Source: Euprymna scolopes (lineage: Eukaryota). From it: a stretch of 64,000 nucleotides of DNA. Of this stretch, positions 31,810-31,990 are shown in pieces. The translations under genes and the position numbers were made by a program. The stretch lies in NCBI GenBank assembly GCA_053919585.1, contig CM132787.1. The stretch is one strand, 5' to 3'. The stretch's first letter is position 1. Every line of letters begins with the position of its first letter. A model generated the notes under the pieces. It did not search any database, was not told the origin of the DNA, and saw only the letters and a program-made list of their open reading frames with translations.

Positions 31810-31990
31810 AATACTTCATTTACTCACATAAAATCAATATACGAAAGTATTAATTTATTCCTAAACTTTAAGTATTTACTTCAAAACTGCTCAATACGTA
31901 GGTAGACCTAGTTAGTAATTTATAAAATATATATGGCGATTAAGATATTCAGTGTAGCTTAATCGCCATATATACTTTATAAATTACTAT
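31810..31990. mobile_element. Shorter derivative of the 20740-21003 Penelope fold-back lacking the HHR core
   Basis: It shares TACTTCATTTACTCACATAAAAT..CAATACGTAGGTAGA..ATGGCGATTAAG, then jumps to the inverted ATATTCAGTGTAGCTTAATCGCCAT. Confidence 0.85.

Follow-up and report, generated by a model that had tools for sequence, protein, structure and literature searches.

Arm junctions at a predicted hammerhead cut in an abundant, putatively Penelope-type element of Euprymna scolopes

Penelope-like elements are characterised by a pseudo-LTR with a hammerhead, an inverted, 5'-truncated partner copy, a short 'tail' of 30-40 bp and insertion into AT-rich or (TA)n targets (PMC8557442, PMC4209133, PMC11167929), and pairs of hammerheads lying on opposite strands were already described in 2014 (PMC4209133). 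Once purified, a Penelope-like protein cuts both strands of DNA and extends them, with reverse transcription from two internal sites; in the reconstituted system ribozyme cleavage was not needed, and RNA-seq showed no cleaved RNA ends (PMC11167929). For the published anole element, there is likewise no pile-up of RNA-seq reads at the cut, and depth is flat. Hammerheads are nevertheless conserved in Penelope-like repeats across animals. Also close are the animal non-LTR retrozymes, short non-autonomous hammerhead-bearing repeats that are related to Penelope-like pseudo-LTRs and presumably mobilised by those elements (PMC7761336; bioRxiv 10.64898/2026.07.22.740005).

In the literature on junctions at ribozyme cuts, we found no report that maps inversion junctions onto the cut. 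For R2 and related non-LTR elements, Eickbush and Eickbush reportedly found in 2010 that an HDV-like ribozyme defines the 5' end of the RNA and thereby the 5' junction. Twin priming in L1, as Ostertag and Kazazian are said to have described it in 2001, leads to inversions with 5' truncation.

Here we describe an element family represented in a window of 64,000 nucleotides (the whole stretch of DNA analysed) and counted by genome-wide pattern searches of the 5.9-Gb assembly that contains it. Like Penelope-like elements, the family has a predicted type I hammerhead with a palindromic helix III, head-to-head arms and insertion into (TA)n; its two 3' ends could fit two internal starts of reverse transcription, and its 33-nt arm is comparable in size to the 'tail'. 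Unlike them, its units are short and non-coding (about 180-430 nt) without an attached RT/GIY-YIG frame, its 3' ends lie 112 nt apart rather than 30-40, and its helix III is longer than that of 'minimal' Penelope-type hammerheads. It resembles the retrozymes in consisting of short non-autonomous hammerhead-bearing repeats, but retrozymes are defined by head-to-tail tandem arrays and circular RNAs, whereas the copies described here are dispersed inverted pairs. Compared with R2, both ribozyme class and element class differ; cleavage in R2 is the rule and gives a simple 5' junction, while in this family it would accompany a few percent of events, with a palindrome as the outcome. As in L1 twin priming, both target strands would prime one RNA, with cDNAs joined by microhomology in inverted orientation; unlike in L1, where the second site is variable and inversion a minority outcome, the second site here is fixed (+33) and insertion normally produces an inverted pair.

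Window copies and the predicted hammerhead

The relevant features of the window are listed below in element coordinates, in which +1 is the G of GCUUAAUCGCC, directly after the GUA of the predicted cut.

20728-20873, minus strand: copy A, long arm, +146 to +1 (96.5% identity over 144 nt)
20874-20923, minus strand: copy A, hammerhead copy of the long arm, with core G5>A (CUAAAGA) and C>G at +2 (sequence reading and blastn)
20924-20973, plus strand: copy A, hammerhead copy of the short arm, with intact core; predicted cut after 20973 (sequence reading)
Parts of that plus-strand copy: CUGAAGA 20931-20937; helix II 20938-20951; GAAA 20952-20955; helix III 20956-20971; UA 20972-20973
20974-21004, plus strand: copy A, short arm, +1 to +31, then (TA)n (sequence reading and blastn)
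31736-31802: (CA)n/(TA)n, the other flank of copy B (sequence reading)
31803-31989: copy B as a whole, with tail and outer stem common with copy A (20728-21004)
31803-31944, minus strand: copy B, long arm, +143 down to +2, the 3' tail (blastn against a natural reference arm, 93% over 142 nt)
31945-31956, plus strand: copy B, start of the short arm, -12 to -1, covering helix III (loop and stem, 3' half) and the UA that precedes the cut (in register with 20962-20973 of copy A)
31957-31989, plus strand: copy B, short arm, +1 to +33, the usual short-arm end of the family, adjoining (TA)n (blastn, 97% over 33 nt)
31990-32046, no strand: (TA)n microsatellite flank, the target of copy B (sequence reading)
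54774-55090, minus strand: long form of the element, -284 to +33, with (TA)n on both sides (blastn)
56300-56642, minus strand: relative diverged from the long form (76% identity) and carrying a piece of another tail (blastn)

Copy A is laid out as a 146-nt minus-strand tail, a near-perfect hairpin and a short plus-strand arm up to (TA)n. In the motif, helix I consists of GCAUAAGC paired with GCUUA..GC and is followed by CUGANGA, helix II (AUCC/GGAU), GAAA, a 16-nt helix III whose AUAU loop lies within GAAUAUUC, and UA with the predicted cut. The conserved core, CUGA(A/C/G)GA...GAAA...UA, is complete in most of the 56 arms read and in the right arm of copy A, and the features of a type I hammerhead (C3U4G5A6N7G8A9, G12A13A14, A15.1-U16.1 and an unpaired H17) are all present. 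The minimum free energy fold of a typical copy (L015:1583-1648) has three helices around the core, with helix I open and A17 unpaired before the cut, at an unexceptional -10.4 kcal/mol (z-score only -0.28). Rfam hammerhead models did not match copies A and B at the gathering threshold or at E up to 10, the only matches being to generic hairpin 'miRNA' models; the motif departs from the hammerhead models in its 16-nt helix III and its A/G10.1-U11.1 pair. Helix II variants read by eye were AUCC/GGAU, GUCC/GGAU and a few GUCC/GGAC, in copies too similar for covariation, and position -15, which is hypervariable, falls on the unpaired base of helix III. At the level of the motif, we accept copy A and its family as carrying a putative hammerhead with a predicted cut.

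The initial annotation described copy B as a minus-strand arm that stops one nucleotide from the predicted cut and switches to an inverted arm inside the helix III palindrome, and sequence reading and blastn confirmed these coordinates. The minus-strand arm ends with GGCGATTAAG at 31944, which is +2 and one base short of the predicted cut. The plus-strand arm starts at 31945 (-12) with ATATTCAGTGTA, inside the GAATATTC palindrome of helix III, and beyond 31956 it reads GCTTAATCGCC onward; the short arm thus crosses the predicted cut. The hairpin centre is absent, and the tail and short arm are the same as in copy A. At 20872 copy A has a C where the family and every RNA read have G, so the G of copy B at 31944 is the family state. 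Copy B is about 7% diverged, and its terminal branch (0.069) is the longest in our tree. We tentatively regard it as an old member of an abundant non-autonomous Penelope-type retroelement with a type I hammerhead that inserts into (TA)n, a reading that, taken jointly with the full mechanism proposed below, comes close to an even chance without reaching it.

The Penelope identity suggested earlier agrees with the inverted pairs and the (TA)n target, but no RT/GIY-YIG frame lies beside the element's copies within the 64-kb window. The element is therefore at best non-autonomous, and the 'Penelope' label rests on architecture and literature. Elsewhere in the window are a weak RVT_1 remnant (925-1416, minus strand; 19.5 bits, below the cut-off) and a hAT transposase remnant with DUF4371 and a hAT dimerisation domain in two frames (5040-6579, plus strand). 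Three other inverted repeats, 26215-26530 with 27475-27790 (316 nt, 97%), 59564-59712 with 60434-60582 (149 nt, 97%) and a 108-nt hairpin with a 3-nt spacer (48570-48677 with 48681-48788), are probably foldback or terminal-inverted-repeat elements unrelated to the family.

A family of inverted pairs rebuilt at insertion

The hairpin is not peculiar to copy A, as the best 40 genomic matches to this copy span all 268 bp of the unit at 93-96% identity. Exact stem 9-mers are separated by 31-125 nt in 12,943 hairpins and by 0-30 nt in 659, for at least 13,600 head-to-head hairpins, and the tail, searched with an exact 17-mer, occurs 32,497 times (a family of at least 32,000 tails). Two 3' ends are fixed, at +33 and +145, 112 nt apart. 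Among about 55 loci with an AAGCTT junction that were read on both sides, nearly all have one long (+145) and one short (+33) arm, and the long arm can stand on either side. Nearly every copy read is flanked by (TA)n; the copies are dispersed inverted pairs with unique flanks, and tandem joints are only occasional. The long form at 54774-55090, in which the sequence goes on upstream of the usual hairpin apex at -51, constitutes its own family (2272 first-look candidates).

Several observations concern the ends and surroundings of these copies. Short arms and long-form copies share their last base (..TTACTA) at +33 beside (TA)n (31989, 21004 and 54774 in the window), a position that may be a second fixed start site of reverse transcription. 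In one tail (C1:3452154), what lies upstream of a joint at +33/+34 is another sequence, a hint that modules may meet here. At 55091-55994 and 56090-56642, nested inverted and direct repeats cluster around the long-form copy and its relative with 76% identity, and they look like a complex multi-copy insertion typical of these elements.

The two arms of a locus have subfamily variants in common, as well as rare ones (+10 T, +21 C, +17 G/C). Minor alleles were found in both arms 30 times where 11.7 were expected (24 loci), and variants present in just two or three of the 48 arms occur in both arms of one locus; distances within a locus are smaller than those between loci (permutation p 0.009). 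At G000:C1:5032956-5033031, an identical internal deletion running from within helix III to within helix II is present in both arms, so that here a deleted template was copied into both. Some loci are discordant between arms at subfamily sites, so two templates must sometimes take part. The shared rare variants show that the arms are largely made anew from one template per insertion; the hairpin apex is therefore set at each insertion and can be read as the place where two cDNAs ended. A partner copy rebuilt at each insertion, largely from one template and with fixed outer ends, constrains models of the insertion mechanism independently of the cleavage question.

A further class of differences is confined to one arm. 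Of the 48 arms, 6-7 carry a change of the catalytic G5 to A (CUGA to CUAA) that their partner arm lacks (window 20914, the left arm of copy A, and L004, L010, L014, L017, L019 and L020), and G>A at -5 is likewise limited to one arm in seven loci. Such recurrent transitions at fixed sites could mean that one cDNA or RNA was deaminated or edited, or that the sites are hypermutable.

Where the arms meet

Junctions were read by hand from the first 50-100 matches listed per search, which, varying with the search, lie on contigs C1-C16. Of the 100 arms at the first 50 loci of the 31-125 class, about 60 begin at -51, the outermost pair of helix I, and their spans measure 124 or 122 with TTATGCGCATAA or TTATGCATAA at the centre; about 13 begin at -44/-43, the boundary of helix I and the core, and the others are scattered. 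The -51 start (window 20923/20924; L002-L030) sits on a GCGC word, next to a CGCG word that goes unused. Among the first 50 loci of the 0-30 class, 26 are the perfect palindrome GGCGATTAAGCTTAATCGCC, with AAGCTT at the predicted scissile bond, and about eight have a recurrent asymmetric form in which -3 is joined to -17, the two bases of helix III; none of the 50 has a symmetric -2 or -3 junction.

Genome-wide, GGCGATTAAGCTTAATCGCC is present at 314 loci (reversed-pattern control, 0), or 48% of the hairpins with a gap of 30 nt or less. Control palindromes in the same stem are found at 35 (TTAA-centred), 31 (CGCG-centred, a word present in about half of the copies) and 59 loci (centred on the 8-mer GAATATTC), so the scissile-bond junction is 5-10 times commoner than matched palindromic controls. 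These three controls also fail to explain the AGCT excess by plain slippage between palindromic words. Overall, the cut-site junction ranks third among arm starts and makes up about 2% of hairpins, or about 5% relative to the -51 class. The breakpoint distribution, sampled here in part, is thus far from uniform and contains a sharp class at the scissile bond, although its main peaks lie elsewhere. The sharpness to one base is partly forced, since the AAGCTT palindrome equals arms at +1 sharing GC, at -1 sharing AGCT or at +2 joined blunt, and ends at -1, +1 and +2 collapse into one product. An unbiased set of 100 tails showed no enrichment of breaks at 2 nt or less from the cut (by eye, 2 of about 10 breaks between -23 and +11). 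Copy B on its own proves nothing; across the genome, a small but significant share of hairpins join exactly at the predicted cut.

Our best explanation, to which we give slightly less than even credence, is that twin-primed cDNAs are made on one RNA and that ribozyme-cut RNA gives the AAGCTT junctions. In this scheme both strands of the cut target would prime reverse transcription on one RNA from two internal starts (+145 and +33), each cDNA would extend to the 5' end of the RNA, and the cDNA 3' ends would be joined through a short self-complementary overlap, so that a discrete RNA end would lead to a symmetric junction. On RNA already cut by the hammerhead, both cDNAs would halt at +1 and share GC, producing AAGCTT. 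The anatomy and the counts are observations, and the steps connecting them are deduced. The narrower proposition, that Penelope-type hammerheads cut RNA in vivo, that the cut RNA is still reverse transcribed and that cDNA run-off is joined through the shared GC, is a possibility we place somewhat below the midpoint.

The peaks at -51 and -44/-43 are not accounted for by cleavage and need another cause, and they bear on a reading in which no catalysis takes place. Here the reverse transcriptase would stall or switch at helix boundaries of a folded, possibly dimeric hammerhead, the nascent cDNA ends would pair by means of self-complementary words, and the cut site would form a peak on uncut RNA because the scissile bond is at the base of helix III and inside AGCT. 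Recurrent starts at the helix boundaries -51, -44/-43, -17 and -3 and in the helix III loop fit this reading, as do junctions centred on the TTAA, CGCG and GAATATTC palindromes and in the (AT)4 run. It is harder to reconcile with the frequency of AGCT, which is 9-10 times that of the two other 4-nt stem palindromes, one of them all G+C, and about five times that of the 8-nt palindrome, or with the lack of symmetric -2 or -3 junctions in the 50 loci read. We consider it rather unlikely, though the likeliest of the alternatives.

The junction of copy B falls outside the cut-site class. In its exact form, AAG joined to ATATTC, it is found at two loci genome-wide, copy B and L035, and in L035 the long arm is on the opposite side; a one-base variant, AAGCTATTC (AAGC joined to TATTC), occurs at five more loci with differing arm arrangements. 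These counts are roughly what a broad background of irregular junctions gives among about 13,600 hairpins, and with several thousand irregular junctions genome-wide, small recurrences such as this one are expected. A role for the junction as a subfamily mark was rejected, as the seven loci that carry it differ in arm arrangement and do not cluster in the tree. Copy B, with its long arm at +2 and short arm at -12, is one of the irregularly joined copies, which make up roughly one quarter of the total.

The initial annotation raised as its alternative a deletion of the hairpin centre after insertion. Applied to the AAGCTT loci as well as to copy B, this would make them former full -51 hairpins, shortened when slippage occurred or the hairpin was processed. 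A long, perfect palindrome is an unstable sequence, most copies have the full hairpin, and copy B, among the most diverged copies (branch 0.069), has had time enough for such a loss and keeps its outer parts exactly; AAGCTT, moreover, equals a deletion between two AGCT direct repeats. On the other hand, no usable microhomology is present at the junction of copy B, and slippage should strongly favour the 8-bp direct repeat GAATATTC over other sites, yet this repeat accounts for 59 loci against 314, with about 30 each for TTAA and CGCG. In addition, a deletion variant can sit in both arms of a locus, indicating that such variants pre-exist in templates. Deletion after insertion is in our view improbable as a general source of these junctions, but it may have shaped single loci such as copy B.

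A second family, RNA reads and the recurrence of the junction

The window contains an unrelated element in which inverted arms and a hammerhead are also combined:

30731-31064, minus strand: tRNA-like and hammerhead element, with its long arm on the minus strand (Rfam and sequence reading)
30792-30836, minus strand: Hammerhead_1, 32.1 bits against a gathering score of 34, core CUUUUGA
30847-30902, minus strand: tRNA-like stretch
30983-31064, plus strand: inverted arm, starting in the helix III palindrome

ARAGORN found no tRNA. As annotated initially, the inverted arm begins at its helix III palindrome, at 30983 in ACTCGAGT, and the idea that helix III palindromes serve as switch points holds in this family: of its 125 loci with 30 nt or less between the stems, about 15 of the first 50 are centred on the 10-nt helix III palindrome GACTCGAGTC, the commonest junction, which favours the reading without catalysis. 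Five of the 50 fit a CCAA microhomology, a recurrent form that a deletion would also explain. Another seven or eight have near-cut forms, CCAAG[A/T]CTTGG, read as -3/+1 or -2/-1 and offset by 1-3 nt, and none has a blunt cut-site palindrome, so the exact cut-site junction is not replicated here.

We also examined raw polyA RNA-seq reads from two runs labelled with the genome's own organism. Reads cover the main family on both strands, and in neither run is there an excess of read starts or ends at the cut or elsewhere, with depth flat across the cut, in libraries that capture 5'-OH ends poorly. This is as expected without catalysis and is compatible with a rare cleavage event, so the RNA data neither support cleavage nor exclude it. 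Most reads crossing -51 run on into the upstream part of the long form, which leaves a transcription start at -51 unsupported as the cause of the main peak. The AAGCTT joint is present in a few reads; in run X24 it appears in four reads as a join of 20870 to 20973. Separately, 60-76 reads per run exit the tail at 20816 into unrelated sequence (CACTCAGAAGAAAAAAGATG...) and another 74 exit at 20794; apparently, the tail also belongs to other transcripts or to a further repeat family.

The 314 loci would count amplification rather than events if a few founders with short junctions had been amplified, for example through hairpin transcripts opened at the apex that recreate the 5' end. With a short arm made anew at every insertion, inheritance of a junction is possible in principle; L038 and L045 pair in the tree, and there is a mild excess of the 'A' subfamily, with A:C at +27 being 42:18 in AAGCTT loci and 41:35 in random arms (Fisher p 0.08). 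However, in a tree that also contains full-hairpin copies, the AAGCTT long arms form no clade: their 14 rows give 12 changes, against a mean of 12.6 after shuffling. This tree is star-like, poorly resolved and of low power, its full-hairpin rows having been picked by similarity to copy A. AAGCTT copies are interspersed with full-hairpin copies, fall in both supported groups of the tree and occur, with unique flanks, in both main subfamilies and several rare-variant ones in about population proportions. They are also without the ribozyme and all sequence upstream of it. Neither tree nor subfamily composition thus supports a founder clade, and we regard both heritable junctions and a count inflated by amplification as quite improbable. 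The weak but consistent indication is that AAGCTT junctions arose repeatedly, in several subfamilies.

In sum, the proposal made for copy B, that reverse transcriptase ran off a ribozyme-cut RNA, is partly supported by the family, where cut-site palindromes recur at 5-10 times the level of controls, while copy B itself is outside that class, AGCT also allows microhomology or a stalled enzyme, and neither RNA ends at the cut nor an exact cut-site junction in the second family were seen. The AAGCTT peak is indirect support for self-cleavage by the predicted hammerhead. Reverse transcription of self-cleaved RNA is plausible for the family; the long arm of copy B may be a run-off product from cut RNA, or the junction may be due to a stalled enzyme or a later deletion, a choice that is undecidable from this single locus. 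If the cut-site palindromes are run-off products, they would be the first in vivo trace of cleaved RNA entering retrotransposition. About 2% of hairpins would then amount to a genomic fossil record of ribozyme activity that can be counted, and junction histograms would offer a cheap genomic assay for any genome rich in these elements.
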